DNA from: Macrostomum lignano
Lineage: Eukaryota
Length of the DNA stretch: 64,000 nucleotides
Assembly: GCA_002269645.1 (NCBI GenBank)
Contig: NIVC01000867.1
Span: forward strand, 186,001-250,000
Direction of reading: 5' to 3'
In this document: piece by piece, positions 12,313 through 63,550 of the stretch
How positions within the stretch are numbered: position 1 is the first letter of the stretch
Layout: every line of letters starts with the position of its first letter
The notes under the pieces: model-generated
What the model was told of the DNA's origin: nothing
Database searches by the model: none
What the model saw: the letters and a program-made list of their open reading frames with translations, nothing else
Made by a program: the position numbers and the translations under genes

Positions 12313-14101
12313 CTGGCTGCGCAGCAGCCCGAGGATTGTGCCGTCTCGGCCCTAGGAAGCATAGACATATTTCTATTGTGTCATACTTCGCGGGCCGCAT
12401 CACTTCAAGTATGCAGTTTTCGATATACTATCTTTACCATAGACTATAATCCCGGGCCGAATCGTTGTTTCTGCCCGCGGCGTGGCTAAGTGCAAAAACT
12501 GAGGTGGGGGGGGGGCTTCGCCCCCACATTTTAACCATAGATAAAATCAACCAGAGTCTGACTACAGTTAAGTAGTGGATATCAGAATTCTTTTCTCTGA
12601 ATTTAACTTCCTTTTTTGTCAACCTGCTGAGCTAGAGAAAAATGATAAATTTGTCAAGAATTTGCGACTGGAGATATCTCCGGATTTGACACTCTATGGA
12701 TGAAATCAAGGCTGTAACAGTTAGTGTGCTAAGTTATAGATTATAGCATCACTCTAAAGAAACCGATTTTTGTAGGTCGTCGCCGCGATGAATCCGTCAA
12801 TCGATACACACCAAGCGCATCTCTGAGAAGAGAAAGATCCAGGTTTCTCGCAGTCTCACGGAAGCATTGCATTCAGAGTCGAAGATGTCGAAGGTGGTTT
12901 CAATGGAGCACCGCCAGACGGAGTACAATGAGCCTGGCCCGTCGCGCAACCCAATAGCTACTCAGGAGAAGGATGGAGCTAAAATTAGCTTCTTCTTGTA
13001 AAAGAGGCAGGTGGTGAATGGAAGCAAGATGTGAACCTGTAACGGACAATGAATTTTGCTAGCAATGTATGTGACAGTTACATTTAATGGTTATTTGTTA
13101 CAACTTTTAAGTATACATTAATTACGAGTACATATGTTATACTCAATCGTTCTGGCAAAAGTTTGGCCATAGACTAGCCTCACATATCGTCATTTCGGCC
13201 CGCGATGTGGCCTGCGAAATCTAGACACAATGATATAGAGCGACTCAAAATTTTCTCAGGACAAAAAATATTGCCTTTAAAGTTACTAAGCTGCTCTAAA
13301 AGCGTTCAAGCTTTTCACTGACGATTTCGAACTTCTCTTCGTCCTGCTTCTCCATGTCGATTCGTTTTTCGTCCCTGCTAGTCTCCATCCGTCGCAGGCA
13401 GAACTCCAGATGTTCAGCACAGTCGCTGTAGTGAGCCAGAGGAAATGGTCCGTAGGAAACTCAGTAGTTTGAAGGTCATTTTGCCTGAATCCTATTTTAA
13501 CCTTACGATATTAACCTTACGATGATATAACCATCTGCGAATCTAGAGTAACAGTATTTTGAATGCGCTTCTGAGTGTCGGATCTGAGTGATAGACGGTG
13601 GGCTGTGCCGTGTGCAAATTGAATGCAAATTGTTAAGCCAAAGTTACAGCATGGGAACCCGAGGATTCGCTTTCATGGCAAAATTTTCACCTGCTATGGA
13701 AAGCTACCGTTTACAAGTTTTTTTAGCCTAAGTTAAACGCCTTGAAACTTCATTGTGACCAATATACATGTAGGTGAGCCCTAGCAAGCAGTATGGTAAT
13801 GTGCAGATGCCAGCAGATAGTGAAAGACGGCTTAGCACAAAAATTCATTCCAATTGTCTCCAAAAAAGGCGAGTGGCTGAAATACATGTACCTTTTGCGG
13901 TGATCTAGCTGTTGCGAAGTCTCGCATTTTTGGGAAAGCAACCATGAACTACTAGTGATGAGACCAAAGTAGTATAGAGAAAATTTTCTAAAATTAACTC
14001 TTGTGCGAATTCAGGTATTTTAGTTTTTAAAAACTCGGATAAGCCGTTTTTCATAGTTTAGAATAGCACAATAATCAGATTCATTATGCCCACTTTTATA
14101 A

Positions 14102-15122: not shown

Positions 15123-17441
15123 ATGTTGGTCACAAAGTTTTCTCTGCTGATTTTGGTCAGCTTAGCTTCACTTGTTGCTCGCGGCGGTAAGTTCGGGTGA
15201 GCTGTCTAAATTTCTCATTAGCTTTGTTAGAAATTGAAACAAGCCATCATAGCTCAATATATATTTATCAAGCTAAAAAACTTCTAAAAAGGTAACGCAA
15301 ATCACCTTCAATGAATGCTCGCTTAATGCTTTCTTCATAAAGAAGACAGCTGTTAAAGAAAGACAGTTAAAACCGTTCATGCTTTGTTTAACTCTTCAAG
15401 CTTCACAATTTATGCGTTCAAAAATTTGCACGATTGCACCGACGTTCAGACGAAGTATGATGTCGTTATCCATCGATGTAATGTAAAAGTACGGATTTGT
15501 CAGTGTGGTTGGGGGGTTTACTACAATCACTACACCACCAGCCCTAGCAACCATTAACTTCGGCTACTTCTTTGATTAGGCTAGTAAAAAAGCTATAGGA
15601 AACCCCCAACAGAACGAGTCAGAAGGACATCAGAAATTAAGACGGATATCAGCGAATATTAGTCTGAAAGAAGCAGCACCGATTGAGTTCCTCGAGCGCG
15701 TACTACCCGAGCACTGTTATCGTAGCTTCTGGTAAGCAGCTTGCTTCAAGTCATTCTTTCCGGGAGGCGTGTTAGGCTAGTAGAAAGTGCAGTTCCTTCT
15801 TTGCCAGAGCGTCATAACGCCTGCTTGTACTACTTTATAGCACTTGGACTGCAGGGCACCCGAACCGACCCCACTTACTATGAACTATACATACTTGAAG
15901 TATTTTGTAGCTGGCTGTTGCATTTTATTATGAAATGTGACAAATTTATTAATCGAACCAGCATCAAAACACAGTAGTGTTCAAATCAGAGCACACATGA
16001 ACTGCTGCTCCACAGTCACAGCCGGCAAAGAATCTCAGCAGAAGGTCGGTCGCGTCATCGCCTCAACAGAAGTCATGCTGCTCAACTCAAGCATCAAAAG
16101 TGACGTCTTGAACGTGACTGAAGTTTCAAGCAGCATTGAGTGCGTGGCTCTGTGCCAAGCAAAGCGCTGCGTTCTGGCAGTGCTCAACAAGGTGATGCAA
16201 ATCTGTCGAATTGTCATCGTCTTCGACTCTCTGAAGTCTGCGGCACCTCCAGGAGCTCACGTGAATCGGCTTCTCGGAGCGGAGACTGGAGACAGAGTCT
16301 GGGTCGCTGAGGACTTTGCTGCTACAATTGCGAGAAACTCGAAGCGAACATTTTTGAGTGAGCACTTTTGAAACCTTCTGCTGAAAAGCTGTTCAAAATT
16401 TGCTGAAGATACTTTGTGAAGTTTCAAGTTTTCTACGACTATCCAAATCCCTATCGCTGGATACTTTCGAGTTTTCATAGTTTTAATTAAAGGCAGCTTT
16501 TATCCTATGAGCGAGCAAATATCGAACCTGAACTTCGCAGACAGCAGCTCAAGCAAGAATGGCTCAATCCAGCTCGCTCTGATTAACGTCACCGGCTGCT
16601 ACCGCATCGTGGTTGCCGGAGCCAAAGGCGGCGACAACCCGTTCACTGGGGGTCGTAGAGGTTTCGGCGCCGTCACAGCTGGCAGTTTCAACCTGACAGC
16701 CGGCACCCAGCTCTCTATCGTGGTCGGGCAGGCGGGCGGCTCTGCTAACTTGAACACATCGGGAGCTGGCGGCGGCGGAGGCAGCTTCGTGTACCGGACT
16801 GCGGATCAGCACCTGCTGATGGCGGCTGGTGGCGGCGGCGGCTGCTCCTGTTGCAAAAACGGTGGGTCTTTAATTGATAACAAAATTGAAAATAGCGTGC
16901 CTCTATTTTTACTTGTTCATGCAGACCACTTTTATTAAAAAAATTTACAGGTGTTTCCGGCAAAAGGGACCAAAATGGTGCGGATTCGAATGGTAATTAC
17001 ATCCTCAAAAGTGGACTGGGAGGAACCAATGGTGGGCCTGGTTTCAACGAACCAAACAAAACTAAAGAACTGCTGTGCCACGGCGGCTGCGGCGCCGGCT
17101 GGCTTGGCAGGGCCGTCAATCCAAGGCGATGCTCCTGCGACGGCGAGAGAGGCGGCGGTCTGGCGGACGGCTGGGCCGGCGGCAGCGCCGGAGAGAGCGG
17201 CACCGGCGACGGCGGCTTCGGTGGAGGCGGCGGCGGAGGCGGCAACGCTACCTCCCCGGGCGCTGCCGGAGCTGGCGGCGGCTTCAGCGGAGGCGGAGCC
17301 GGTGTGGGCCGCAATCAAGCCGGAGGCGGCGGCGGCTCGTTTTGCAACGGCAGCGACTGCATCGGCGTCACGGGAGGCAACTCGGCTGGCGAACACGGAT
17401 GGGTGACGCTGCGACTGCTGGCTGCTGGCACCTGCCAGTGA
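15123..17441 (+). CDS. Secreted PAN/Apple-like + ALK/LTK-type glycine-rich domain protein, paralogue 1 (405 aa, 4 exons)
   Basis: Exons 15123-15186 (signal peptide MLVTKFSLLILVSLASLVARG), 16016-16357 (ECVALCQAKRC...C), 16541-16861 (GCYRIVVAGAKGG...FNLTAGTQLSIVVGQAGG...GGGGGSFVY...LLMAAGGGGG) and 16951-17441 (GDGGFGGGGGG...GAGGGFSGG...GGGGGSFC...HGWVTL, TGA). All introns are GT-AG phase 1, and the total of 1218 nt is in frame. The exon 2 acceptor could alternatively be at 16022. Confidence 0.85.
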
Positions 17442-18061
17442 ATGCGAAGATTGTCGTGATCAGACGAGATTCGATTTGAAGAACTTTTGAATCAAGAAAT
17501 CAAAGCAAAACTTGATTAACTATAAGCTATAGTAATAACGATATAATCCTTATTTTTAGTTTTTATGAGGCAAAAATATAAAGTGTTCTGGCACAAGAGC
17601 AGTTAAAACCCGGGACCGTATCTGGTTTGCATTAACTGATGCTGAGTTTGCATTAAACTGTTAAGTTGGTGTCTGTCCGTTTCAACCTCTTTTTCTATTT
17701 TCTAGACAATATTCCATTTGGTAAGATTGTTTATTTGATAAATTAACCAAAACATATTTGCCCTAGAGCTTGGCTAAAATGCTTTTAGGCTTGGAAATTT
17801 GTCAAATTAAGATAAACTGGGGTTGGATAATTTGACTTCAATGCTAACTCATATAACTGAGCAAACAATGGCGCTAGTGAAATTTTGCAAATAACTCGGA
17901 AGTGATTCAGTCAGGTGCCTCGTTTCACTTTGGTCTACAGGTTTAATTTTAGCAGAAAACTGGCAATCCAGGGGCTGTCGCGACTAAAACGTTTGTTCCC
18001 TGCTAATACGAGCTTGTAATGGGAGAGTTTAGACTGATATTAGCTTTCGTTTGAAACAGCC

Positions 18062-19036
18062 ACACCTGATCTTGTTTTGTGTGTAGCATGACTGACCTTG
18101 AGCAGCCTGTCACCTGATCTTGTTTAGTCTGTAGCATGACTGACCTTGAGTAGCGTGTCACCTGATCTTGTTTAGTGTGTAGCATTACTGAACTTGAGCA
18201 GCGTGTCACCTGATCTTGTTTAGTCTGTAGCATGACTGACCTTGAGTAGCGTGTCACCTGATCTTGTTTAGTGTGTAGCATGACTGACCTTGAGCAGCCT
18301 GTCACCTGATCTTGTTTAGTCTGCAGCATGACTGACCTTGAGTAGCGTGTCACCTGATCTTGTTTAGTGTGTAGCATGACTGACCTTGAGCAGCCTGTCA
18401 CCTGATCTTGTTTAGTCTGTAGCATGACTGACCTTGAGTAGCGTGTCACCTGATCTTGTTTAGTGTGTAGCATGACTGACCTTGAGCAGCCTGTCACCTG
18501 ATCTTGTTTAGTCTGTAGCATGACTGACCTTGAGTAGCGTGTCACCTGATCTTGTTTAGTGTGTAGCATGACTGACCTTGAGCAGCCTGTCACCTGATCT
18601 TGTTTAGTCTGCAGCATGACTGACCTTGAGTAGCGTGTCACCTGATCTTTCTTAGTCTGCAGCATGACTGACCTTGAGTAGCGTGTCACCTGATCTTTCT
18701 TAGTCTGCAGCATGACTGACCTTGAGCAGCGTGTCACCTGATCTTTCTTAGTCTGCAGCATGACTGACCTTGAGCAGCGTGTCACCTGATCTTTCTTAGT
18801 CTGCAGCATGACTGACCTTGAGCAGCGTGTCACCCGATCTTTCTTAGTCTGCAGCATGACTGACCTTGAGCAGCGTGTCACCTGATCTTTCTTAGTCTGC
18901 AGCATGACTGACCTTGAGCAGCGTGTCACCTGATCTTTCTTAGTCTGCAGCATGACTGACCTTGAGCAGCGTGTCACCTGATCTTTCTTAGTCTGCAGCA
19001 TGACTGACCTTGAGCAGCGTGTCACCTGATCTTGTT
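18062..19036 (+). repeat. 48 bp minisatellite (GTCACCTGATCTTGTTTAGTCTGTAGCATGACTGACCTTGAGCAGCGT), about 20 copies
   Basis: Near-perfect tandem units; source of the 362-aa repeat ORF 18003..19091. Confidence 0.97.
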
Positions 19037-19074
19037 CATCAAGGTCAGGGGGAGTTAATAACAAATTTATCATT

Positions 19075-21610
19075 GAATAGGTGCGTGGCACCTTTCATTG
19101 CCCCAGCTCGGATAACGGGTGCAGCGGAGGCATGTTGAGGACGGGTCTACGACGTTTGCCTGCGGGACGTTTGCCAGCCGACGTTTGCCTGCGGGACGTT
19201 TGCCAGCCGACATTTGCCAGCCGACGTTTGCCAGCCGACGTTTGCCTGCGGGACGTTTGCCAGCCGAAGTTTGCCTGCCGGACGTTTGCCTGCGGGACGT
19301 TTGCCAGCCGACGTTTGCCAGCCGACGTTTGCCAGCCGACATTTGCCAGCCGACATTTGCCAGCCGACGTTTGCCTGCCGGACGTTTGCCAGCCGACGTT
19401 TGCCAGCCGACGTTTGCCTGCCGGAAGTTTGCCAGCCAAAATTTGCTAGCCAATATAAAGCCAGTCAGTGAAAAATTTGATACTGAAACATTCGCAGTTT
19501 AGCGGTTTGACAAAAACCGTTTTTACTCCAACTTTTTGACGGTTATTCGCATATATACAAGTTTGAAAGCAAAATCTATAAATTATGCAATTTATGCAAA
19601 ATCTATATAAATTATGCAATTTATATAGATTTACATCTAATATCCAGTTTAACAACGATTTTCTTTGAATGTGAAAATATTGTTTACTTTTGACAATTGT
19701 GTATCGTTTTTCCCAGTTTGAGATGTTTGATTTTTGATGTGCGAAAGAAGACGCGCAGATTACAACGGGAATCTCCAGCGATTAAGTTATGAGGCAAACA
19801 AAAAGAGCTGCTGAGCGGTAATTCTGGCTCATATATTTCTCAGTTCATTGGGAGATCTAAAAGTAAGCAAATTGATTCCAATGCTGTTGTATTACTACTC
19901 AAGTAAGCAAGGAAACCGCGATCTCAACGTACATGTGTAGACGAGTCGAATGCGGTGCGTTTTTATAGTAAGCTATATAGCAGAATAGCCAGACAAGCCG
20001 CCAGTAGCAAGCTAGTAGAATAGCAAGCGCTAGACACTACGTATGCAAAGCTTAGTCACGCCAAGGACTACTAAAGTAGAAGTACGCAGCACTCGAAATC
20101 TATGAAAAATGTTTTGAAGGCCATAGGGAGATAGGAAGTTTTCATCTTTTCAGCACAACAATTGTTATTGCTTTCATACGAGGCAAACCCAATGTTCATC
20201 TTTTGATATGTTGTGCCAAAATCGTTGTTAAACTAGATATTAGACGTTAGACTGATGAACTGCATAATTTATATATTTTGCTTTCAAACTTGTATACATG
20301 CGAATAACCGTCAAAAAGTTGGAGTAAAAACGGTTTTTGTCAAACCGCTAAACTGCGAATGTTTCAGTATCAAATTTTTCACTGACTGGCTTTATATTGG
20401 CTAGCAAATTTTGGCTGGCAAACTTCCGGCAGGCAAACGTCGGCTGGCAAACGTCCCACTGGCAAACGTCGGCTGGCAAACGTCGGCTGGCAAATGTCGG
20501 CTGGCAAACGTCCCGCAGGCAAACTTCGGCTGGCAAACGTCCCACTGGCAAACGTCGGCTGGCAAACGTCCCGCAGGCAAACGTCGGCTGGCAAACGTCC
20601 CGCAGGCAAACGTCGCTATCCCGTTGAGGACGGTGTTCAGGGTAGAGGGGTACGCCAGGGTGATGGCTCGGCAGATGCTGCCCTGCAGCTGGTACAGCCA
20701 GTCTCGCACCGTCTTCAGCTTCAGCGCACTGTACCAGATGAAGCACGCGCATAGTTGATGCTGGGTCGGATGATGCCTGTGTAGAGCCATCTGGCCGTCA
20801 TGGAAAGAGCCCCCAGGTAGGTCCGGTATCTCTGCTTTACTCGTTCAAAACATCGCTTAGTGCTCCAGATGACATTGCCAGCATGCACAGTCCAACGCAG
20901 ATCATGCGTGAGCGTTATCTTCCTATGGTGAAGATAATGGCCACCGTCCTGACGGTGCTGATACATGTAGTTCGGCCATTCCGGGTGGCCCAGTTTTGCA
21001 CCTTGTCAGCGAAGTGCTGCTGCATCAGATTCCGTAGCATCATGCTGACGTCATCGGCGAAGCCGGCTTTGACGATGCTGCTCGGGACGGCAGCCATCAG
21101 TCGTTCGCTCATCACGTGGTTTCAGAGAAGTGGGTTGAGTACCCCAGTACCCCGTCTTGGCCTCGGTCTTTTATCACTCTGTTAGTGCAGATTGCATCCA
21201 TGAGGGTGGAGGTCACCATTCTGTTCCCCGATCATTAATTCGATCCATCGCACAATGCTGGATCTGACCTTTTTCTGTAAAAATGGGTCTCTGAAGGAGC
21301 CAAATTGTAAGTTATCAAAGGCCTCTTGATGTCAAAGAAAAGTCAACAAGCGATCTCTTTATTGAGGATTGCTTTCTCAAAGTCTGATGTTATACGTAAA
21401 ATGATCCGTTATTTCCCTGGCTGAAAAGCGAACTGGTGCTTACTTATGGGTGCCGCCCACAGGTTGCAGTCGCACAGCCTCCTCAGGATGAGCCTCTCCA
21501 TCAGGTTAACGCAGAAGGAGTTTAGGCTAATGGGATGGAAGGATTCCACGTTAGTATCGTCGCTTTAACGGGCTTGGGGATGACGACCACCCAGGCAGTC
21601 CTACAAATAA
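19075..21610 (-). pseudogene. Decayed LINE reverse-transcriptase remnant (same group as the other two LINEs), interrupted by a TIR element
   Basis: Fragments AWVVVIPKP, GVLNPLL*N, KAGFADDVS...QNWATRNG...TVAIIFT, WLYTGIIRPSI.YACFIWYSAL and LNMPPL match the order of motifs in the 41.8-43.4 kb RT. Many frameshifts. Confidence 0.8.
19143..20622. mobile_element. Non-autonomous Mutator/foldback-like element, 1480 bp, with long TIRs
   Basis: 9-bp TSD GTTGAGGAC at 19134-19142 and 20623-20631. Ends are GGG...CCC. The inverted arms (about 19143-19660 and 20220-20622) contain an 11-12 bp CGACGTTTGCCAGC tandem repeat. Confidence 0.88.
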
Positions 21611-21730
21611 TGGGGATGTGACCAGGTGGTGAAGCGATCAATAATAAGCTATGATATGATGTTATGATGTTATGATGAGCTATGATGTTATGTCTTGAAT
21701 TTAAAATAAGCTTCACAAGTCGTCAAGTGG

Positions 21731-22745
21731 TGTTCCAAAATAATTGCGTACTTCTTACGCTCCAGACCACTTAAGGTTTCTTATATTTTAGCTTGCCACA
21801 CAGCGGGCTTTAAAACTGGTACTGTCTCTTGGCTTCATGCGAGCCCATAGATAAAAGCAAAACGGTCAAACTGACAACATAAATACTGGTACACAGTCAA
21901 GTCACATTATCCCTCTTTTCTTCAAGATACTTGGTACCTCTCTGGTGGTCTCCGGATCCGCACTGGGTATCTGTGCTCCGTGGGTTGATTTGCAATCGGC
22001 TCCTCATCGTCTCCAATAGATCTGTTAGTTGCCTCTGCTCTGTCTCTGACATGGTCCCTGTGCACCACCAGGTCTCGTCCTTGATGGTCCCGCACTCGTT
22101 TCAGCTGTTCGCCCATCGCTTCTTGAAATACTCCTTCTCCCTCCACTCCTTGTTAAAGGGATCTTGAACCCAAACAGGATTGTGGACTTGATCGGTTTTC
22201 TTGTCCTGAAACGACCGACGATGTAGCAGTGACAACCTCGTATTGAACTCGCGACGACCAAACATTTCTCGACACGGAGCGACACCATTGGCTCTTGGGC
22301 AGACTTGAATGGCGTAAAAAGCCTGTTGCATTCAAACTTCCGGGTCTGGGTCGTTAAGCTGTTTTAACTTGGTCTTCAACCTTTTTACTGCGACCTCGGC
22401 CACGCCATACGAAGCGGGATGATATCGGGGAGACTTCAGATGTAGCGCTTTCATCCGCTTCAACCAGGCCTCCGTTTCATTAGCAACGAACTGTCGTCCA
22501 TTGTCAGTGACGAGTACTTCCGGGATGTTGAAATTGTAAAATGTTTCTTGCAGCACTTTAATCACAGCCGCTGCGTCAATATCTCGAACCCATTCGGCAG
22601 CAATAAATCCCGTCTTGGCGTCCGAAACCACCAGAAAGTAGTCTCGGTCTAATTGACCAAGATCTGCATGTACTCGGCACCAGGCTTCCTTTGGCACTGG
22701 CCATGGTCTGAGCACAGCTTTCTGTGAAGGTCTCAGGCGTTGACA
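21731..22745 (-). mobile_element. Gypsy/Ty3 LTR retrotransposon 3' remnant: integrase fragment, polypurine tract and probable 3' LTR (21731-21906)
   Basis: Integrase core PWPVPKEAWCRVHAD...FLVVSDAKT...PEVLVTDNGRQF...SPRYHPASYGVAEVAVKRLK (22332-22715); C-terminal RIRRPPERY; purine tract AAGAAAAGAGGGA followed by TGT...ACA. Confidence 0.8.
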
Positions 22746-23862
22746 TGTGCGAACTGAAATCTAACAGCCGTTTTGAGTCGTGGTAATTTTGAGTCCTAAA
22801 TTACAGCAACGAAATGGTTTGTACTTTAGGTATGAGACGAGAGGACGTCTCATACACAAGAGTGAATCTTAAGATTCAAGAATAAACTATTATAAAAAAC
22901 AATGTAATCTGCTTTCTTCATTGTAAGTTTGCTCAACTGTAAAAGCAACCAAACCTCTGACTAATGAAAGACCGGCTTGCAAAGGTATACATTCCATATT
23001 GCCGAAATACTCTTAAAGGAGAGACAAATTATGCTCATGTGCGATTTACCAAAAAAAGATGTAAATGTAAGAGCTTAGTCTTGATGCTATTAGAAGTATA
23101 CATCAATCACAGGTATAGCGTTGACTGATGGGATAAATGTAGACACGTTCATAACTACGAAAGTCACCCAAGCTCATCAACGGCTTTAGCAAAAAGAAGC
23201 AATCTTATGAAGCAACAGTTGCTTGGAATGCCTGAATTTCGCTTTCAAACAATGGCTTCGTTTTCTTCAATGTTTTTTAAAAGTTTCCGCTGCCTCCGCC
23301 TTGGCTTCCGGTAAAGTGTTCCACTGACTTCTTCTTCAGTCAACCGTTGCAATGTACTCTTCCTTAAGCGACCGTACTACTGACTTTGGGGGAAGCCAAA
23401 GTTAGCCAGTAGGTTTGCAAGTCTGCTTCTCGTTATAGCTCACTACCACTAATGCAGTTGATCTCAGAATTTTTTTCGTCCCTAAAGCATTTTTTAAACA
23501 ATAGCTCATGCATCGATTCTTTTTCTTAAACTTTTCCTGGGCTTAGCTAATGCAGCTCTGAGCTTTACCAAAGCTGAGAAATATTTCTTACGATTAACTG
23601 TTTCGTGGGTTGGTTAAGCCTCTCGAGCAAGCACTAAGCAATTTACTCGTATTTGTAGAAGAGACACTACACAAGTAAAAATATGTAAAAGCTAGAAGAT
23701 TTACAGAATCTATAAATACACGCATTACATGAAGCGATATGAATAGATTGAACTTAAAAAAAAATTAAGACTGCTTGGATTTGAGTGTCGTATATTTTTA
23801 GAGTGTCTTAGGGTAAAATTACCTTCCTGTAGGGAACATGATTACCTACCTTTGTCGTTTTT

Positions 23863-24413
23863 TCTATACTGATGTGTTGTTGTCTCCATATGCCGCGATG
23901 CTGTTTTTTCTATACTGATGTGTTGTTGTCTCCATATGCCGCGATGCTGTTTTTTCTATACTGATGTGTTGTTGTCTCCATATGCCGCGATGCTGTTTTT
24001 CTATACTGATGTGTTGTTGTCTCCATATGCCGCGATGCTGTTTTTCTATACTGATGTGTTGTTGTCTCCATATGCCGCGATGCTGTTTTTCTATACTGAT
24101 GTGTTGTTGTCTCCATATGCCGCGATGCTGTTGTTTCTATACTGATGTGTTGTTGTCTCCATATGCCGCGATGCTGTTGTTTCTATACTGATGTGTTGTT
24201 GTCTCCATATGCCGCGATGCTGTTTTTCTATACTGATGTGTTGTTGTCTCTATATGCCGCGATGCTGTTGTTTCTATACTGATGTGTTGTTGTCTCCATA
24301 TGCCGCGATGCTGTTTTTTCTATACTGATGTGTTGTTGTCTCCATATGCCACGATGCTGTTTTTTCTATACTGATGTGTTGTTGTCTCTATATGCCGCGA
24401 TGCTGTTTTTTCT
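23863..24413 (+). repeat. About 46 bp tandem repeat CTATACTGATGTGTTGTTGTCTCCATATGCCGCGATGCTGTTTTT, about 12 copies
   Basis: Direct tandem units with no unique spacers. Confidence 0.97.
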
Positions 24414-25179
24414 ATTATTATTATTACTAATACTAATTTTACTAATATTACTACTATCAATATTACTATTCTACTTCTTATTAATATTGTTACTGTTATT
24501 ATTATTATTATTACTATTAAATAGACGCTGGCATAGGATGTCAGCAAAGCACCCGCTGGTGGAAAAGAGTAAGGGGTAAGGGGTAGAGTGAAAAGAGTGA
24601 GGGGTAGACTGAGGGGTAAGGCTGTATCTGTTTTCTATGCTTGTCACCGACGCTGTTCCCTATACTGCTATGTAGTTGTTTTCTACGCTGGTTTTTTTAG
24701 TGGTTTATACTCGTCCTGATATGAGTATATCTACGATTTTAAAGTCAAATGGAAGTAATGTGATTCCAAGATTAGCTCTTCGATCTTAGGGAGTCCGCTG
24801 GCCATAGACGCAGAAACTCTTGCAATCTCGGTGGGAAGTAGGGGAGTAGGGGTGAACTTGCGGCAGCAGAGCTGCTACTGGGAATCGAATTGTTAAACAA
24901 GAAAAAACTTTTGTTTAGAAAGTCTGAGTCAGAGAAACATCCTTCCGTGGGTAGACGTACAAAGCCAGTGTAACTGTACTGCAGACCAGGGGTGGGGGGC
25001 AGAGGGACTGAATCTGTTACTACCCGCGCCTTGACAACAGCACAGCAAACAAATCAACTGAATGGCCTTTCAGAAAAAATGTAAAAACGGTAAATATTTT
25101 GGAGCGGGAAAAAGCTCCTTATTCCCATTCCGACACACAATTTCAGTACTGAGAGACGGCAAACACACAACTTTGGGAG

Positions 25180-28100
25180 ATGTGTCAGCCACAGGTATTG
25201 CAATTATTTGCCATCGGTTTGTGCTGCGTCATGGTCTCCGAAGGTGTGTGATCAAGTTGATTTTTTGCTCCTAAATAGTTTATTAGCAAAATATATCCTG
25301 GTTTTACGTGGCAAAGAAGTACTTTGAACGGACGAGAACTACTCTGGCGAGCTTTTCGATACGGCTTGCTTTTTAATTTGTAGCAAGGCGAAATCTGAGA
25401 AGGCGATACTTTTAGACCAACTAACTTTCAAAGCTCAATTAACCTCCTCAAGGCATCTAATGACTAGAAATCATATAGGCCTCTTGAGTCCGATCTTGCA
25501 TCTCGCGGTTGCCTAAATTTATACCGATTGGCCAGGTGATACGCAGGACATGACTTTACCCACCCCCCTCCATAACTATTGCCATACAGGCGCTTGCAAC
25601 CGAACTCGCTATGTGCAGCACAACGGCGTCCTTGTTGTCAACTCGACCGTCAGTAGCCAAGTCCTGAATGCCACCGGAGTGACTTCAGTTGAAGCATGCG
25701 CCATGCTGTGCGGAATGAAATCCTGCTCTGCCGCCGTGTTCTGGAAGAGCAGCGATCTGTGCCAGCTGGTGACGGTGTCTCGGGAGACGGGATTTGCTGG
25801 AAACAACGAATGGAGACTACTGGGCTCGGAGACTGCCGATGTGGTGGTGATGAAGCTGGAAAACTTCGAAGAACTGATGAAGCCTCTTGAAGTGTTTACA
25901 AGTGAGAGTTCAGCCGCATGAATAATTGCATAGAGTATCGCACACTTGGTGCACTTCTTCCCTCTTCTTTAAGTCGACTCGAGCTGGCCAAAAGTCACTA
26001 CGATAGTTTTGGTTTTTCCAAATTTTCCTACGCTATCCCATATTCGTGAGTTTACTCGTACTATCGGCTGTTTTGGGGTTGGCCTGCGCTAGCGGGGGGG
26101 GGTTGGGCACGCTTTTATTTACAAGTGTCTTTATCGATTGAAATGTCGATTGAAATGAGACAAATATCAATATATAGACTAACTTTGGCCACTGAGCCCT
26201 CGTGTGGTTATTATTTTCTCGCAATTCTGGTCCTACATTGCTGACAGCGAAGCCTCATTCAAGTCAGCAGATCAGAATGGAAGAGCGAGATGAGAAGAGC
26301 AACAACCCGTGCACTTTTGGCGGAGCATCTTTGAAGACTTCGCTGAAGACAAGAATTGGGACGATGCAAAGCGTGCCTCCAAGGTGAAGCTCCTGCTGAG
26401 AGGGGAGGCCCAGGTCTGTGATTGGGACATGCCAGATGCCGTGAAAAAGAGTTATGAGAAAGTCAAGGCGATGCACTTCTTCTCCAGCAATACGGCGGCT
26501 CTGCCAGTCAGCACCGTGCCATGCAGGAGTTCCAAGGTCGACAACGCAAGAATGGCGAATCAATCAGGGACCTCTCGTTCGCTCTCAGGCTGCTGTACAT
26601 GAGAGCCCGCCCGCATGACCCATCAACGCTCCGCGATCGGGAGCTCAAGTTCAGAATTATCCAGCTATTAAGCGCAGGGATACGCGAAGCCCTGCTCAAG
26701 GAGAGCAACTCGGATACATGCACACTGGGAACGCTGGTCGAGAGAACCACCAGACTGGAGCAGGTGATGAGTAAGAACGCGACCGCAAGTTCGCCTATGA
26801 TCTTCGCGGTTGACGACCGGCTGGTCCGACTCGAGCAGCAACTGGAGACACTGACAGCCGCCGTGACAAGAGGTACCCCTCAAAGAGGCCTCAACCAGCG
26901 CACATTCGGTACGACAGCCGAGGCTTCCCGATTTTTATCGCCCTGAGTGAACAGTGAACCTTTTTTGAACTTTTCGCAATAGAGCTTTATTCCTCGTTCT
27001 TGGCGGGGGGGGAAGTAGTGTGAGTTTTGTGTGGCATGTTTTGGGGTTGGCCTGCGCGGGGGGGTTGGGCCCGCTTTTATTTATCTGTGTCAATATCGAT
27101 TGTAGTGTACGCGCGTACTTTGTGCGTGACAAATATGAAAAAATATATATCGACTAACTTTGGCCTATGAGCCCTCGTCTGGTTATTATTTTCTCGCAAT
27201 TCTGATCTTACATTCGTTTTATACTCAATCCATATGTGCATATTTGAGTCAGCGATAACTAATTCAAACATGCATGGATTTCAGACAATGGAACGGGTCG
27301 AATCGGCTCTGTCCAGCTGGTGACCATCGACATTGCCGGCTGCTACCGGATCGAACTCGCTGGTGCCAAGGGCGGCGACAACACGTATGTCAGTCCTGAC
27401 CAACTCGGCGGCAGGGGAGCTCTGGCTGCTGGCAACTTCAGTTTGTCAGTCGGAGTTCAGCTGTCGATTGTTGTCGGCCAGGCCGGAGGTCCGTCGCAGA
27501 GCAGCAGTTACTCTAGCGGCGGCGGCGGCGGAGGCAGCTTTGTGTACCGGACATCGGATAATGAGCTGCTGATGGCCGCTGGCGGTGGTGGCGGCGCGTC
27601 GTATGGGTATTCCGGTAAGCATGCGATGTTTATTGTATCGTAACTGAGAAGTTTAATAGTTGCTTTTGCCATATCGTCGTATGAATATGTAGTTATTCAA
27701 TAATGCACGTCTAAGTAGTTTCAAGCAACTGAAGTCAACACAAACAGTTTGAACTTGAAGGAGATGATAGACGTATGAAACATTCGCCGACACTTATTCA
27801 GACACTTCTACAGACACTTTAGTTTCTGTCGTACGAATCGTAGGAACAAGCATTAAATTTGTTTATTCCTAACAAACTACCAGTAAACTGCTTTATTTTA
27901 AGCTTCTTTGCTTTATTTTATTAAAATAAAATAAATTTTATTATTAAAAAATGAATTAGGAAGTGTCCTGGACAAATTTAACTTTCTTCTTCACGTGAAG
28001 AGAATCTATGCAGAATAACAAATTTCATGATTCATATTTAATAAAATAAAGCAAAAAAAGCTTAAAATAAAGCAGTTTACTGGTAGTTTGTTAGGAATAA

Positions 28101-29585
28101 ACAAATTTAATGCTTTTTCCTACGATTCGTACGACAGAAACTAAAGTGTCTGTAGAAGTGTCTGAATAAGTGTCGGCGAATGTTTAATACGTAGATGATA
28201 GTCGTATATCTTTTAGCTCGTCTTTAAATTTGAAAATTGCAAGTATTGAATGCACCAATGGGTTTTTAGAACTTAGGTGCGAAACTATGGCAAGAGCGAC
28301 TTAAGTATCTTCTTTCAAGTATCCTCAATAGTCCTTGAACCAGGAACAAAACTACACAAATTTAGCTTTTTGCAGTAAGTTTAGGAATTTTAGCCTTCAA
28401 ATAAAGAGTACATCAGAAGGAAGTCTATCGACACTTTTCTATGGTAAAATCGCACAAATGTTCGTGATTTATGGGCCAGAGTTGATTGAAGGTGTCTGCC
28501 AGCATAATGGCTCACTGATTTATGACCAGCTGGAGACTTTTTTCTGCTTTGAAAAACTTTATCCCAGACATTCTTCAATTGACGACGATCGCATGCTAAA
28601 ATTCTTCTTTTGAAAGCAAAAATTGGCATGTATACTAACTGCGAGCTTGAGTGAGCAGTAGGCACTTCTAAAAAATCGAAAAGCTAAAAGTTATTTTGTT
28701 GAAAAACTGAAATGCACTCAGCAACATGGTGTAAAGTTTCCAGCACGAAACCAGTTGTCAACTTTTCTCAGATCTCAGCCTTAGGTGACGCAAGGCTGGT
28801 GAGGAGGCAGTGGAGAGTTATTGGCTAGAGTTGGATTACAGCTGCCACTTGTTGACCTGTGGTTTCGTGAAAACTTTAACATGTTGCTGAATGTATCTGC
28901 TTAGCTATTGGAGATTTCAAAGCCTTACTTTCCACTCCAGTAGATTGGGTAAATGAGAAATCGCTGCAATTAATGAACTGACTGCATGCTGTAAATGAAT
29001 TTTAGGTCAACCCGGTGAGGCGGGCACGAGAGGCTCAAACTCGGTCGGGACTAATTCTGTAAGTCTTGGCCGTTCGACAGATAGTCGATCGGAATTAATT
29101 GTTTGCTGCAACTTAATACAGTTGACGTTTCCACAATGTCCGGCTTGCAGCCAGAGCGAACTGGCACCGGTGGCGCCAACGGACAGCCGGGCAGCAACGA
29201 CCAAAGCACTGCGGATACCAATAGTAACCCTGGAGGCTGCGGAGCCGGCTGGCTTGGCAAGCCTACCGCCGCCCGCACAAGCACCGAATACGGAGACAGA
29301 GGCGGCAGCCGCGCCGACGGCTGGGTCGGCGGCCGCGCCGGAGACACGAGTCCCGCCGACGGCGGCTTTGGCGGTGGCGGAGGCGGAGGTGCGGCCGCCA
29401 TAAAAGGAGCGGCAGGGGCCGGCGGAGGCTACAGCGGCGGCGGAGCCGGGGCTCGCAGCGACCACGCCGGAGGAGGAGGCGGCTCCTTCTGCGGCGGCAG
29501 CGGCTGCGTGGCCACAACGGGTGGCAACACGGGCAGCGAGCACGGCTTCGTGCTGCTGCAAATGATCGGCAGCGGCTGCGCTTAG
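25180..29585 (+). CDS. Secreted PAN/Apple-like + ALK/LTK-type glycine-rich domain protein, paralogue 2 (397 aa, 5 exons)
   Basis: Exons 25180-25243 (MCQPQVLQLFAIGLCCVMVSEG), 25590-25901 (EACAMLCGMKSC...LCQLV), 27285-27614 (GCYRIELAGAKGGDN...LSIVVGQAGG...GGGGGGSFVYR...LLMAAGGGGG), 29006-29058 and 29151-29585 (DGGFGGGGGG...GAGGGYSGG...GGGGGSFC...HGFVLL, TAG). Total of 1194 nt is in frame, and the first three intron positions and phases match paralogue 1. Confidence 0.85.
26047..27212 (+). mobile_element. Gag-only non-autonomous LTR retroelement, 1166 bp, in intron 2 of paralogue 2
   Basis: Direct repeats 26047-26237 and 27021-27212 (TG...CA); 4-bp TSD TTCG (26043-26046, 27213-27216); PBS-like TTGCTGACAGCG after the 5' LTR; G-rich PPT at about 27001-27018; frameshifted gag (FEDFAEDKNWDD...; QEFQGRQRKNGESIRDLSFALRLL). 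Confidence 0.85.
27771..28192. mobile_element. Palindromic MITE, 422 bp, Mutator-like
   Basis: About 155-bp near-perfect inverted arms (ACGTAT.AAACATTCGCCGACAC...); 9-bp TSD AGATGATAG at 27762-27770 and 28193-28201. Confidence 0.88.
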
Positions 29586-33800: not shown

Positions 33801-52320
<18,520 letters not shown>

Positions 52321-54843: not shown

Positions 54844-57800
54844 ATGTCCAATGTGAACAGTTGTGAAGAATCTGACGCGTCTAGTTACAGTGACGCAAGT
54901 GTAGATTCCGATTCAGAAGAACCCAAGCAAACAAGCAAACAGCAAAATATGAAAGAAGAGCTGGACGTAAGTTTGGACGCCGGACAACAGCGAAAACAGG
55001 TGAGAATTCAACTATTAAATACCTTTACACGTACGTAAAGTACTTATATTACTTTAAATTCTTAAGCAATTACGGTTATAGATTGGATTGCAAATTCTAT
55101 AATTTTACGTTGTCATTAATAAGACCAGTTTACATTAGACTTGATAAGATTATATTAGATTAGAATTGTTAGTATATGGGATTAAATTAGATAAGATAAG
55201 ATAAGATTAGATTAGTGTAGATTAGATTAGATTAGATTAGATTAGATTAGATTAGATTCGATTCGATTCGATTCGATTAATTATATTATATTATATTATA
55301 TTGAACTGGACTAAATTAGATTAAAATGGATAATATTAAAATAGATGAGATTTGAATGTATTAGACCGGATTGGATTATATGGATTATATAATCTATTGG
55401 ATTAGATTAGATAAAATAGATTAGCCTAGATTAGATAAAATAGATTAGACTAGATTAAATCAGTGTTCAACAGTCTGAGTTTAATTCAATGTTCGCAGAT
55501 TTTTCACGCTATTCGCACTGGGCAAGCAGAAAAGTTTTCTCAGCTGACCACAAAATACGGGTCAGTCTGTCTGGATTATCTCGACGAAGCAACGGGTTTG
55601 AGTTGTCTAAACTTGGCAGTGCAGTGCGGCAGAGCCCGAATAGTTTCGGCGATACTGAATTCCTATGGCTCCAAGGGTAGCGAACGCCGAAACAAGGCTG
55701 CCAATGCGACATGCAAAGGACTGACGCCGTTGCACTTAGCGGCGAATTTTTGCCACAGCCGGGCGCTGATCAGCCTGCTGGCTGGAGCTGAAATTGACTG
55801 GAACATTCGAGACGACAGAGGACAGACAGCGGTGCACATCGCTTGCAATCGAAATGACGATAATATCATTAAAGTGAGTCTATCGATTCTATGAGAGTCA
55901 CGATCCTGATCAATCATCGATTCTATGAGAGTCACGATCCTGATCAATCATCGATTCTATGAGAGTCACTCCTGATCAATCATCGATTCTATGAGAGTCA
56001 CTCCTGATCAATCATCGATTCTATGAGAGTCACGATCCTGATCAATCATCGATTCTATGAGAGTCACTCCTGATCAATCATCGATTCTATGAGAGTCACT
56101 CCTGATCAATCATTGATTCTATGAAAGTCACTCCTGATCAATCATCGATTCTATGAGAGTCACTCCTGATCAATCATTGATTCTATGAAAGTCACTCCTG
56201 ATCAATCATCGATTCTATGAGAGTCACTCCTGATCAATCATTGATTCTATGAAAGTCACTCCTGATCAATCATCGATTCTTTGAGAGTCACTCCTGATCA
56301 ATAATCGGTTCTATGAAAGTCACTCCTGATCGATCATTGATTCTATGAGAGTCACTCCTGATCAATCATCGTCTCAATGAGAGTCACTCCTGATCAATCA
56401 TCCATTCTATGAGAGTCACTCCTGATCAATCATCCATTCTATGAGAGTCACTCCTGATCAATCATCCATTCTATGAGAGTCACTCCTGATCAATCATCCA
56501 TTCTATGAGAGTCACTCCTGATCAATCATCCATTCTATGAGAGTCACTCCTGATCAATCATCCATTCTATGAGAGTCACTCCTGATCAATCATCCATTCT
56601 ATGAGAGTCACTCCTGATCAATCATCCATTCTATGAGAGTCACTCCTGATCAATCAACTTATACATTCTTATATACTTATTTCTCACCTCACCATACTTA
56701 TATATTGAAGTTGTGACATTCGATCTTAAGCGCCTGTTTAATGGGAATAAATCAGATGACTAATATATATACGTCTAATTTCTACCAAACACAGCTTTTA
56801 CTCGCCTACGATTGGAACAATAAAGCGACTAAGAAAGGCTGCAAATGTTGTAATCCGGTAAGGCAAAAAATCTATAAATTTTTAATTTACTAATTTAGTG
56901 TGCTAACGACCCTAGTTTTAAGCCCCCTTGGATGAAATGGCGCCTTTCAGATGAAATGGCGCCCCTCAGATGAAATGGCGCCCCTCAGATGAAATGGCGC
57001 CCCCTCAGATGAAATATGAAATGGCGCCCCCTAAGATGAAATGGCGCCTCCTTAGATGAAATGGCGCCCCTCAAATGAAATGGCGCCACCTTAGATGAAA
57101 TGGCGCCTCTCAGATAAAATGGCGCCCCCTAAGATGACATGGCGCCCCCTAAGATGAAATGGCGCCTCTCAGATGAAATGGCCTCCCCTAAGATGAAACG
57201 GCGCCCCTCAAATGAAATGGCGCCGCCTTAGATAAAATTGGTGCCCCCTCAGATGAAATGGCGCCCCCTAAGATGAAATGGCGCCCCTCAGATGAAACGG
57301 GGCCCCTCAGTTGAAAAAGCGCGTCTTTAAAAAGAATGGCGCCCTCTTAGATATAATATTGCCCCCTCAAATCCATGAGAGCCCCTCATCATCGAATCCA
57401 TTAGAGTCACTCCTGATCATCCACCACATGAGTCACTCCTGATCATCCACCACATGAGTCACTCTTGATCATCCACCACATGAGTCACTCCTGATCATCC
57501 ACTACGTGAGTCACTCTTGATCATCTACCACATGAGTCACTCTTGATCATCCACCACATAAGTCACTCTTGATCATCCACCACATGAGTCACTCTTGATC
57601 ATCCACCACATGAGTCACTCTTGATCATCCACCACATAAGTCACTCTTGATCATCCACCACATGAGTCACTCTTGATCATCCACCACACGAAAGTCATAC
57701 AAAGTTCAAATATACTTGCGACACTTACATACGCATGGATAACATGAATAAGTCAGATGACTAAAAGACGTCTAAATTCTAACCAATCAACCAATCACAG

Positions 57801-60800
57801 GTTTCAATCTGTGTGTCGGCGAAGGTGAACGAGAAACTGGAAAAACAGCCTTGGAAAAATATGCAGGTATGGAAAAGATCGTTGCATGTTTTATTTACTA
57901 ATTTAGTGTGCTAAATCCTCTGCCCGCCTCACCACAGTTGAAATGGCACCCTTAGGATGAAATGGCACCCCTTAAAATCCATGAGAGTCACTCCTAATCA
58001 TACACCACATGAGAGTCACTCCTGATCAACCACCACATGAGAGTCACTCCTGATCATCCACCACGTGAGAGTCACTCCTAATCATTCACCACATGAGAGT
58101 CACTCCTGATCATACACCACATGGGAGTCACTCCTGATCATCCACCACATGAGAGTCACTCCTAATCATACACCACATGAGAGTCACTCCTAATAATACA
58201 CCACATGAGAGTCACTCCTAATAATACACCACATGAGAGTCACTCCTAATCATCCACCACATGAGAGTCACTCCTAATCATACACCACATGAGAGTCACT
58301 CCTAATAATACACCACATGAGAGGCACTCCTAATCATCCACCACATGAGAGGCACTCCTAATCATCCACCACATGAGAGGCACTCCTAATCATCCACCAC
58401 ATGAGAGGCACTCCTAATCATCCAGCACATGAGAGGCACTCCTAATCATCCACCACATGAGATTCAGCCGTTGAAAACAATACCGTGACAAGAGTCGCTA
58501 AAAAGTCGTTGCAAACAACTCTCTAGTGACTCTAGCGCGTCTGGGGCGACTCTTGTGACTTTTTCCTCGTAACGACTCAAACGCATCAAACGCGTCCAAG
58601 AATCGTTGTGCTAGCGCTTAACTTTCTACTAGCTCAGTAAGCTAGTTAAAGCGCAATTAGGTTGTAATAGGCTAAAACTGAGTGCCCGATTAAAACGGTA
58701 CTTAAGCCAAGAAGCTTCCTGGAGTCACTAGCGTCGCCTCAGAGTCGTTTCAGACGCGTTGCGGATGACAGGTCAAATTGGAAAGAAGTGATTCGAAATA
58801 ACTCTAAAATGACAAGATGTCACGGTTAAACTATAAGGATGGACAGGCAAAGAGGCAAACAAAGCGATGTTTGACGAGCAAGAGACGGCAACAGCGCAAC
58901 GAAGCATTACGAGCGTAAAGGGGGAGCAGCAAACTGACGCCCCAAAAGTTACGGGCAATTCTCTATTTTTATTTCGTTCAAAAAATTGAGTGCAGAGTGG
59001 CGAGAGTGGCGAGAGCGCAAAGGCCACTCGGCGGTATAAATAGGCAGGCCTCCCCCAAATTGGCAAGCCACTGAACGTGGCGGAGTAATGGACGCATACA
59101 ATTCGCCTAAAAGTCGCAGAAGAAGCGCTTTAGCGTCATTGTAAAATCGTTACTGCATCGCATCTGAGTCGATGAGCATGCATTTATCTATTCGCCCAGA
59201 AATTACGATTCAACAGTCTGTTTAAGGCCAGTAGTAACGACTCTGTAACGCGTCCAAAGTGCCTCAGAAGTGACGCACTAACGATCTCCAGTGACGCTAA
59301 AGCTCTTCTTCTGCGACTTTTTTAACGACTGCAGAACGCCGCCGAAACGCCGGAAATGTGACTTTATTTCATCAAGCGACGCAAATGCGCTTCAAACACA
59401 ACTCAGTGACTCTAATGCCACTCTGGAACGCCTCAAATCAAATATACTTACGACACCTGACATTAGTTACATACGCATGTTTAACACGCATAAGTCAGAT
59501 GACTAAAATACGTCTAAATTTTAATCAATCGCAGATTTTACGCGAATCGGCAGCTCCGGTGAATGAGGGACAGAAAACTCTGTTTTGGAAGAATATTCCG
59601 GTAAAGCAAATATCATTGCATTTTCTATTTACTAATTTAGTGAGCTGTTGACCCTAGTTCTGCCCCTTCCTCAGACGAAATGACGCCCCTCAAATGAAAT
59701 GGGGCCCCTCAGATTCAATGGCGCCCCTTGAGATGAAATGGTGCCCCCTCTAATGGAATGGCGCCCCTCTAATGGAATGACACCGCCTCAAATGGAATGG
59801 CTCCCCTTTAGATAAAATGGCGCCCCTCGAATGAAATGGTTACGCCCAGACGTTATCGATTGATATAAAAATGTAATTAACTAATATACAAATTAATTGC
59901 AGCCCAGTCAAAACGCCAATAAACTGCTTACTAGCAAAGACAGCCACGATGTGACGCCGCTGATGCTTGCCGCTTCCGCGAAAGGAAGCTTGCTGAAACA
60001 TCTACGAGGTGAGAGACTGGATCATTAACAGTTTGAATATTTCTTATCTTTAAGCATAGCCCAAGTAGAACTGAAACATTGACACTTGCTATATGCTTGT
60101 AGAGAAACTCGAAGAAGAGGCTCTGAAGAAAGCGATCAAAATGAAAGATCACGACGGGAACACCATGCTTCACTACGCTGTAGTTAGCAACGAGGCGGAG
60201 GTATTAAGTGATTTTTACTATCTTCATTCAAATACATGGCCAATTTACTTCATCTATTCTCCTAAAATTTTTTTACAGAAAATAGAATTGCTAGTAGGTC
60301 GTGGAGCTGACATCAATGCAGAAAATGTAAGAGCTTTCTTGTACTCGTATTTTTTTAAAGCATCGATCGGTCGTCGAACTTCGGCCTGTGGGTCCTTTGA
60401 AATTTCATAATAGCAGTTTATCCGCTCAAGGTTTGTCTCTTCTTTCTTCCCTCTTTCCCCGTTAAAAACGTTACCGTGACAAGAATCGCAAAAAATCCTT
60501 GCAAGCAACTCTCTAGTGTCTCTATAGTTACTCTCGATGCGACGGAGAGGCGATTGTTGCTCGTCACGTGAGAGTTGCAGAATCGTAAGAGACGCGAAAG
60601 AGTAATCCAGTATGATGTTGGTACCGTTGTTGGTACTTGATAGTACAAATAAATCTCTTGTTGGTACCGTTTTCATCGGGTTCCGTCCCGGACGCATTAC
60701 GCTAGATTCTCTATGTCTTAAAGATATGAGCTGGAAGTGCATCTTCATAACTACTGACTGTGATAATCATATCAAACCCGTATTTCAGAGCGACAAATCC

Positions 60801-62885: not shown

Positions 62886-63039
62886 GTGAGCAGGCAACTG
62901 TTTAAAATTTTTGTCATGTACATGCAGATTTGTTATTGCCATCCACCAACAGTCCTTGGTGGGCGCCCCTGTCTCATCGATGGGCCTCTAAATTTTGGTG
63001 GCGCTTCCCTGTCTCTTGTTAGGCGCACCGGTTTCTTTG

Positions 63040-63550
63040 TTGGCGCCCCCTGTCTCTTTGTGGGCGTCCCTGTCTCTTGGTGGCCCCCTGTCTCTTGGTG
63101 GGCACCCCTGTCTCTTGGTGGGCACCCCTGTCTCTTGGTGGGCACCCCTGTCTCTTGGTGGGCACCCCTGTCTCTTGATGGGCACCCCCTGTCTCTTGGT
63201 GGGCACCCCTGTCTCTTGGTGGGCACCCCTGTCTCTTGATGGGCACCCCCTGTCTCTTGGTGGGCACCCCTGTCTCTTGATGGGCACCCCCTGTCTCTTG
63301 ATGGACACCCCCTGTCTCTTGGTGGCCCCCTGTCTCTTGGTGGGCACCCCCTGTCTCTTGGTGGCCCCCTGTCTCTTGGTGGGCACCCCTGTCTCTTGGT
63401 GGCCCCCTGTCTCTTGATGGACAACCCCTGTCTCTTGGTGGCCCCCTGTCTCTTGGTGGCCCCCTGTCTCTTGGTGGCCCCCTGTCTCTTGGTGGCCCCC
63501 TGTCTCTTGGTGGCCCCCTGTCTCTTGGTGGGCGTCCCTGTCTCTTTATG
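63040..63550 (+). repeat. About 20 bp tandem repeat CCCTGTCTCTTGGTGGGCAC
   Basis: About 25 copies; source of several spurious ORFs. Confidence 0.95.

Follow-up and report, generated by a model that had tools for sequence, protein, structure and literature searches.

In the receptors ALK and LTK the TNF-like/glycine-rich (TG) domain serves as a binding platform. To our knowledge this domain is known structurally only from the ectodomains of ALK, LTK and SCD-2 of Caenorhabditis elegans, and work on the glycine-rich domain of ALK and LTK has been confined to its place in a cancer-relevant receptor. The ALK TG fold contains fourteen polyglycine-II helices and is among the very few natural polyproline-II bundles (PMC12227593). 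Here we analyse a 64-kb stretch of the flatworm Macrostomum lignano (contig NIVC01000867.1, positions 186,001 to 250,000 of the forward strand; hereafter the window, in whose coordinates all positions are given). It carries two genes, P1 and P2, with an identical predicted layout: a signal peptide and a PAN/Apple domain, followed after a short linker by a complete TG domain. We propose, with a probability of about 0.55, that P1 and P2 are old members of a secreted family which work as extracellular binding proteins and are not truncated ALKs.

The likeness to the TG supradomain of ALK, LTK and SCD-2 (7NX1, 7NX4, 7LRZ, 7LS0, 7N00, 7LIR) extends over the whole domain as a colinear order of motifs. 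There are differences as well. The sequence identity is only about 21-25%, and the N-terminal MAM/LDLa region, the membrane-proximal EGF-like module, the transmembrane helix and the kinase are missing. Unlike ALK and LTK, P1 and P2 possess a PAN domain in front of the TG domain; ligand binding is a function established for ALK.

Six-frame translation and inspection of the DNA yielded two four-exon genes on the same strand, P1 (15123-17441) and P2 (25180-29585), with a start-to-start distance of 10,057 bp. Their exons are as follows.

15123..15186, plus strand: P1 exon 1, ATG and predicted signal peptide MLVTKFSLLILVSLASLVARG with hydrophobic core; 64 nt; phase-1 donor GCG/GTAAGT
End at 15196, plus strand: P1 exon 1, alternative 74-nt form; donor CGG/GTGAGC at 15197, phase-2 intron
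16016..16357, plus strand: P1 exon 2, PAN/Apple-like domain (C-x3-C-x4-C-x11-C core) and linker; donor TGA/GTGAGC
16541..16861, plus strand: P1 exon 3, first half of the TG domain: GCYRIVVAGAKGG ... FNLTAGTQLSIVVGQAGG ... GGGGGSFVY ... LLMAAGGGGG
16951..17441, plus strand: P1 exon 4, second half of the TG domain: GGCGAGWLG ... GGFGGGGGGGG ... GGGFSGGGAG ... GGGGGSFC ... EHGWVTL
25180..25243, plus strand: P2 exon 1, ATG and predicted signal peptide MCQPQVLQLFAIGLCCVMVSEG; 64 nt; donor AAG/GTGTGT
25590..25901, plus strand: P2 exon 2, PAN/Apple domain and linker; acceptor and phase as in the public model A0A1I8G307
27285..27614, plus strand: P2 exon 3, first half of the TG domain; donor CCG/GTAAGC; exact substring of A0A1I8G307
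29122..29585, plus strand: P2 exon 4, second half of the TG domain; stop codon TAG at 29583-29585

All introns of both genes are of the GT..AG type, all are phase 1 if exon 1 is taken as 64 nt, and the spliced frames are open. The junctions of P1 exon 3 are identical in UniProt A0A1I8G307, and altogether five internal junctions (two of P1, three of P2) recur in this public model. The sole ambiguous junction across both gene models is P1 intron 1. In P1 the stop codon is TGA (17439-17441), and in both paralogues the frame closes 9-10 codons beyond the HG.V strand, which results in predicted proteins of about 390-425 residues. No third copy was found within the 64-kb window by tblastn.

P1 and P2 share 48% protein identity; DNA identity of 68-71% is seen in the Gly-rich exons only. 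The ratio of nonsynonymous to synonymous divergence (dN/dS) is about 0.24-0.49 over the two TG-domain exons, with synonymous divergence saturated, and it is below 1 in every region. The coding exons of P1 and P2 contain neither frameshifts nor internal stops. P1 and P2 are separate, intact genes. An earlier note on this DNA had described two paralogues about 10 kb apart, strongly diverged yet intact, with a stop codon just after the last Gly-rich motif, and all of this holds. It had also noticed that the Gly-rich frame of the last P1 exon is absent from the list of open reading frames (ORFs). This is so because the frame lacks an in-frame start codon, as expected of a terminal exon. The 64-nt signal-peptide exon which the note regarded as shared is common to P1 and P2 in length and phase, not in sequence, and a 74-nt alternative fits P1.

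The TG domain was identified by sequence and by predicted structure. The spliced P2 protein reaches 29.4 bits against PF12810 (ALK_LTK_GRD; gathering cut-off 24.5) and 22.1 bits against PAN_1 (PF00024; cut-off 21.4). When 52 aligned family members are examined, 45 match PF12810 at E<=0.01 and 10 match PAN_1. A single-sequence search of P2 against the PDB sequences with phmmer retrieved no match, ALK included. The picture changes when the profile of the 52 members is used: it retrieves nine different PDB sequences, each an ectodomain of ALK, LTK or C. elegans SCD-2, with E-values of 1.7e-11 to 7e-7 and alignments which run colinearly from the first strand through to HG.V.

The structure predictions point in the same direction. 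An AlphaFold2 model of P1, from residues SVQIR... to the C-terminus, has a mean predicted local distance difference test score (pLDDT) of 84.5, and most of the TG part reaches about 90-97. Foldseek aligns the model to 21 PDB chains with E-values from 5.8e-11 to 3.4e-6, all of which are ALK, LTK or SCD-2 TG structures; the next match has an E-value of 0.016. The AlphaFold2 model of a paralogue, P0004 (pLDDT 75.5), likewise gives 21 matches at E<=3.4e-6, again exclusively ALK, LTK and SCD-2 TG structures, and a next match at E 0.33. These are the sole structural matches to either model at E<=1e-3, and the aligned residues are 21-25% identical. The glycine content of the TG part is 29-31%, and conservation within the family reaches the non-glycine residues of the TNF-like sandwich. 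A chance glycine-rich low-complexity sequence of the PE-PGRS or loricrin type was considered and is ruled out; the non-glycine motifs, the motif order and the fold fit a TG domain. The order of Gly-rich motifs which the earlier note had listed is present in P1 and P2, and its assignment to the ALK/LTK type of glycine-rich domain is borne out by the P2 score and by the exclusive matches of the family profile and the P1 model. The TG domain of P1 and P2 is genuine and complete.

The N-terminal domain was examined in the same way. Its closest known counterparts are the PAN/Apple modules of HGF/SF and plasminogen and the apicomplexan microneme lectins, and it has the PAN cysteine core; the pattern C-x3-C-x4-C-x11-C is common to both paralogues. 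In the P1 model the N-terminus adopts a beta-beta-beta-alpha-beta-beta fold which resembles the structures of the HGF/SF N-domain and of plasminogen PAN. Foldseek probabilities are 0.93-1.0, with weak E-values (0.06-0.7), and a Pfam search did not detect PAN_1 in P1. PAN structures also match the N-terminus of the P0004 model.

Two cysteines of the TG domain deserve mention. One is in the motif GCY of the first strand (P1 16604-16612), the other in GGCGAGW (17085-17105). They exist in P2 as well and occur together in nearly all M. lignano members. In the cnidarian relatives both are replaced (G-V-Y and GG-V-GAGW). The co-occurrence suggests a flatworm-specific disulfide. Another conserved cysteine is located 2-3 residues from the C-terminus. 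The number of cysteines in P1 is odd.

Several features would fit export from the cell. The putative first exons of P1 and P2 encode hydrophobic N-termini, and the paralogue P0005 begins with a typical signal peptide. A Kyte-Doolittle scan with a window of 19 residues disclosed no membrane-like segment beyond the predicted signal peptide in P1 or P2; the only hydrophobic stretch further along in P1 is the charged PAN core. The C-terminal tails are too short for a glycosylphosphatidylinositol signal. An EGF-like module after the TG domain does not exist in either protein, since both end 9-10 residues past the last TG strand. The C-termini of M. lignano and coral relatives are at the same position. 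P1 has 10 and P2 has 5 sequons for N-glycosylation. The tyrosine-kinase motifs HRD..N, DFG and SDVWS.G were absent from all six frames of the 64-kb window, and the next gene downstream of P2 is IFT140. The earlier note had claimed that membrane anchor and kinase are missing, and the hydropathy and motif scans agree. P1 and P2 look like secreted, kinase-less glycoproteins.

The best matches to P1 and P2 all are from M. lignano, in which at least 20 clusters carry a TG domain. A neighbour-joining tree without bootstrap places P1 beside P0002 and P0006, and P2 beside P0001, P0003 and P0013. A recent tandem duplication was considered and is ruled out; in this tree the two genes come out in separate subclades of M. 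lignano, and paralogues nearer to each are located elsewhere. By their placement in the tree, P1 and P2 are old tandem duplicates.

The nearest relatives outside the flatworms are kinase-less cnidarian proteins with 38-50% identity over the TG domain (corals, Nematostella, Actinia, Aurelia, Rhopilema). Automated annotation has named them 'loricrin-like', 'PE-PGRS-like' or 'putative lysozyme-like', e.g., ABFA07_017308 of Porites harrisoni, AWC38_SpisGene21703 of Stylophora pistillata and XP_048576998 of Nematostella. Several contain PAN_1 together with PF12810, they share the C-terminal end with P1 and P2, and none has a kinase. The layout of PAN followed by the glycine-rich domain (GRD) is also found in proteins of Porites, Stylophora and Pocillopora. 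Many other cnidarian members differ, i.e., the TG domain is preceded by EGF-Ca arrays or a collagen-C-like module, which are positioned between PAN and TG or replace PAN. The exon structure differs, too. In the PAN+GRD gene of Porites harrisoni (locus L001, 10001-13388) the third and last exon holds the entire TG domain, whereas the flatworm TG domain is divided by a phase-1 intron. At the Porites locus a neighbouring family member was not found within 10 kb. Hundreds of 'metagenome' proteins of about 300 residues, which start with MPLINFTT..., begin exactly at the Porites TG exon. Because the TG domain fills one coral exon, these are taken as exon-level, prokaryote-style gene calls on cnidarian DNA and not as stand-alone bacterial proteins.

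A profile search returned 5078 representative clusters at E<=1e-3, of which 102 are at E<=1e-30. It assigned bacterial proteins to the same domain family. They resemble P1 and P2 in being extracellular and kinase-less, and differ in being prokaryotic, large and multi-copy, with other partner domains: 2000-6000 residues, up to nine TG copies and sorting domains of the type IX secretion system (T9SS). A protein from a metagenome-assembled genome of Flavobacteriia (MEI8192486, 3708 aa) has nine TG stretches and T9SS sorting domains (profile E 1e-44); one Bacillus protein, from Bacillus mobilis (WP_390259294), has a profile E-value of 1e-31. Among the bacterial carriers of the TG domain (P0182, P0222, P0227) are Flavobacteriia T9SS proteins with as many as nine copies, a Brocadiia DUF2341 protein of 6308 residues and a Bacillus mobilis protein of 428 residues. 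No other bilaterians were among the named top matches sampled from the profile search. Judged by these comparisons, the TG family is not lineage-restricted and probably not ALK-derived. The earlier note had envisaged a lineage-expanded family of ALK-ectodomain-like proteins. The expansion is real; restriction to the lineage and derivation from ALK do not agree with the cnidarian and bacterial members.

What might such proteins do? PAN modules are carbohydrate- or protein-binding domains. Because PAN modules bind, because the TG domain is the binding platform of ALK and LTK, and because relatives combine it with modules of the matrix type or expose it on bacterial surfaces, an extracellular binding or adhesion role is suggested. 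P1 and P2 would act outside the cell as soluble or matrix- or mucus-associated binding proteins. The PAN module may contribute binding of carbohydrate or protein, and the rigid TG module may provide a second surface for protein binding or self-association. P1 and P2 themselves would not signal. In evolutionary terms, the ALK and LTK receptors probably took their ligand-binding module from older secreted proteins of the P1/P2 kind.

Other functions have to be weighed against this proposal. P1 and P2 could be soluble decoys or ligand traps which bind a flatworm Jeb-like ALK ligand extracellularly and damp ALK signalling. That both appear to be secreted is compatible with such a task. However, they are far closer to the kinase-less cnidarian proteins (38-50%) than to any ALK, which a single-sequence search does not retrieve and to which the Foldseek alignments show just 21-25% identity. 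Further, a family of some 20 or more paralogue clusters, in which even neighbours are only 48% identical, is a poor fit to one conserved ligand. Known ALK ligands, moreover, vary by lineage: ALKAL is restricted to vertebrates, and neither Jeb nor HEN-1 is related to it (PMC7851593). Because of the nearer cnidarian proteins, the large, diverged family and the lineage-specific ligands we consider decoys quite improbable, and the same evidence argues against a dedicated ALK-ligand trap, a role of the kind suggested in the earlier note. A use as structural material is possible, though unlikely, e.g., as a bulk component of mucus, of a rhabdite or adhesive secretion, or of the eggshell, with the polyglycine-II lattice as a rigid building block. 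The glycine content of the TG part, the many sequons, and a family that is expanded and diverges rapidly would all suit a material, as would the partner modules of cnidarian relatives, EGF-Ca arrays and a collagen-C-like module, which are usual in matrix proteins. Yet P1 and P2 are small, globular and non-repetitive, and conservation is not limited to glycines but includes the other residues of the TNF-like sandwich.

Two further explanations question the genes as such. A UniProt entry, A0A1I8G307 (P0141; M. lignano, 2348 aa), automatically named 'receptor protein-tyrosine kinase', covers 12816-46900 of the window. It consists of two PAN+GRD units followed by IFT140 domains and is colinear with the window at 86-100% identity. 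The 397 C-terminal residues of P1 (SVQIR...GTCQ) and the two TG exons of P2 are exact substrings. Its parts are an upstream fragment (12816-12998), P1, a minisatellite (20413-20631), P2, a gag ORF (26327-26871), IFT140 exons and a fragment of a long interspersed nuclear element (LINE; 41586-41819); within exon 4 it departs from the P2 frame and so bypasses the stop codon. A kinase domain is absent from the entry. A0A1I8G307 is a chimeric gene model of P1, P2, transposon pieces and IFT140. The entry would be the argument for taking P1 and P2 as parts of a single long gene, or as exons of a receptor kinase extending outside the window, to which we give hardly any credence. Both units start with an ATG and a signal-peptide exon of their own and close with an in-frame stop, and M. 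lignano and coral family members share the C-terminal end. To connect the units, the entry has to pass through the minisatellite at 20.4-20.6 kb and the gag ORF; it exits the frame in P2 exon 4 and takes up LINE fragments besides. Even so it has no kinase domain, nor does the window hold a kinase motif. Highly improbable, too, is that one or both copies are unexpressed relics, i.e., young pseudogenes in a repeat-rich region. The region is indeed dense in minisatellites and transposon fragments, a retroelement sits in P2 intron 2, a loop of P2 is shortened, and the cysteine number of P1 is odd. But neither copy has acquired a frameshift or an internal stop despite saturated synonymous divergence, dN/dS stays below 1 in every region, and all splice sites are intact.

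Several points weigh against the proposal that P1 and P2 are old secreted binding proteins. We infer the function of the family members from their domain content and from the accompanying domains. The TG domain is probably, though not certainly, older than ALK. Taken alone, P1 scores 13 bits against PF12810, short of the Pfam cut-off; its membership in the family is assigned because of family homology and the structure model, and its identity to M. lignano family members, several of which exceed the cut-off, is 44-58%. The signal peptides of P1 and P2 were judged from hydropathy only. The junction of P1 exons 1 and 2 is ambiguous: the acceptors 15962, 16016 and 16022 are compatible with the 64-nt exon 1, and the 74-nt form pairs with the acceptor 15975 (phase-2 intron), the one taken by the public M. 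lignano model. Finally, about 9 residues which P1, the family consensus and P0001, the paralogue nearest to P2, possess are missing from P2 where exons 3 and 4 meet (27614/29122). They belong to the loop between GGGGGAS and GG.NGQPG, and the deletion looks real because no alternative in-frame splice sites exist at this junction.

The surroundings are rich in repeats and mobile elements. The features other than P1 and P2 are listed below.

18063-19036: array of a 48-bp unit (x20), near the 14-bp arrays between the paralogues
22335-22760, minus strand: integrase-core fragment, between the paralogues
26079..27214, plus strand: retroelement remnant of about 1.1 kb in P2 intron 2; not part of the P2 product, wrongly included as coding exons in the public model
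34500-50430, plus strand: IFT140, with both beta-propellers and the TPR region
About 41.1-44.2 kb, minus strand: non-LTR retrotransposon (LINE) in an IFT140 intron, reverse transcriptase at 42439-43512
55454-55891 and 62472-63236, plus strand: ankyrin-repeat ORFs (Pfam)

At its two ends the element in P2 intron 2 carries direct repeats of about 160 bp (26079-26239 and 27041-27214), which are 78-91% identical, and inside it lies a gag-like ORF (26309-26946) without a Pfam match; the element probably is a truncated retroelement with long terminal repeats. Between P1 and P2 a 14-bp unit, CGACGTTTGCCAGC, forms two inversely oriented arrays (19150-19451 and 20413-20615) with about 1 kb between them. 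P2 and IFT140 are separated by about 5 kb of AT-rich DNA. The IFT140 introns are filled with long minisatellites, e.g., at 34854-35860 (16 bp x63), 38634-39402 and 47811-48979 (14 bp x84). The positions of the ankyrin-repeat ORFs suggest a gene at 55454-63236 with exons interspersed with 26-32-bp tandem arrays. Over the whole window the minisatellite density is extreme: Tandem Repeats Finder reported 53 rows with a score >=200 in 64 kb, overlapping rows being the same array at other periods. The GC skew swings strongly on a local scale across the window.

Literature searches turned up no paper which describes the family of kinase-less PAN+GRD proteins. PF12810 is mentioned in running text only in a fungal genome paper, according to which nothing can be concluded about its function (PMC4859500). 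The PAN+TG architecture is already present in the sequence databases and in Pfam; the kind is known but uncharacterised, and its public entries are often misnamed. Several other M. lignano family entries are also chimeric or carry odd names such as Calmodulin, WSC, Myosin motor or PE-PGRS. The public annotation of the TG family is unreliable, and tallies of 'ALK-like kinases' in such genomes would come out too high.

A more far-reaching view, which we hold to be distinctly unlikely, considers the TG supradomain, which is taken for the signature of ALK and LTK, as primarily a module of ancient and widespread secreted, kinase-less proteins in Cnidaria, Macrostomum and bacteria. The PAN+TG and EGF+TG proteins would then be unrecognised extracellular factors of early-branching animals which bind ligands or trap cytokines, and ALK would have arisen by the capture of one of them. 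If this were true, the M. lignano family, being open to RNAi and in situ hybridisation, would be a tractable model for what the ALK ligand-binding domain originally did. The same complete TG domain exists in small, presumably secreted proteins, some 20 or more in a laboratory flatworm with close kin in corals and anemones. This provides an evolutionary context for the origin of the ALK ligand-binding module and an experimentally accessible system in which the role of a TG domain can be studied without a kinase.

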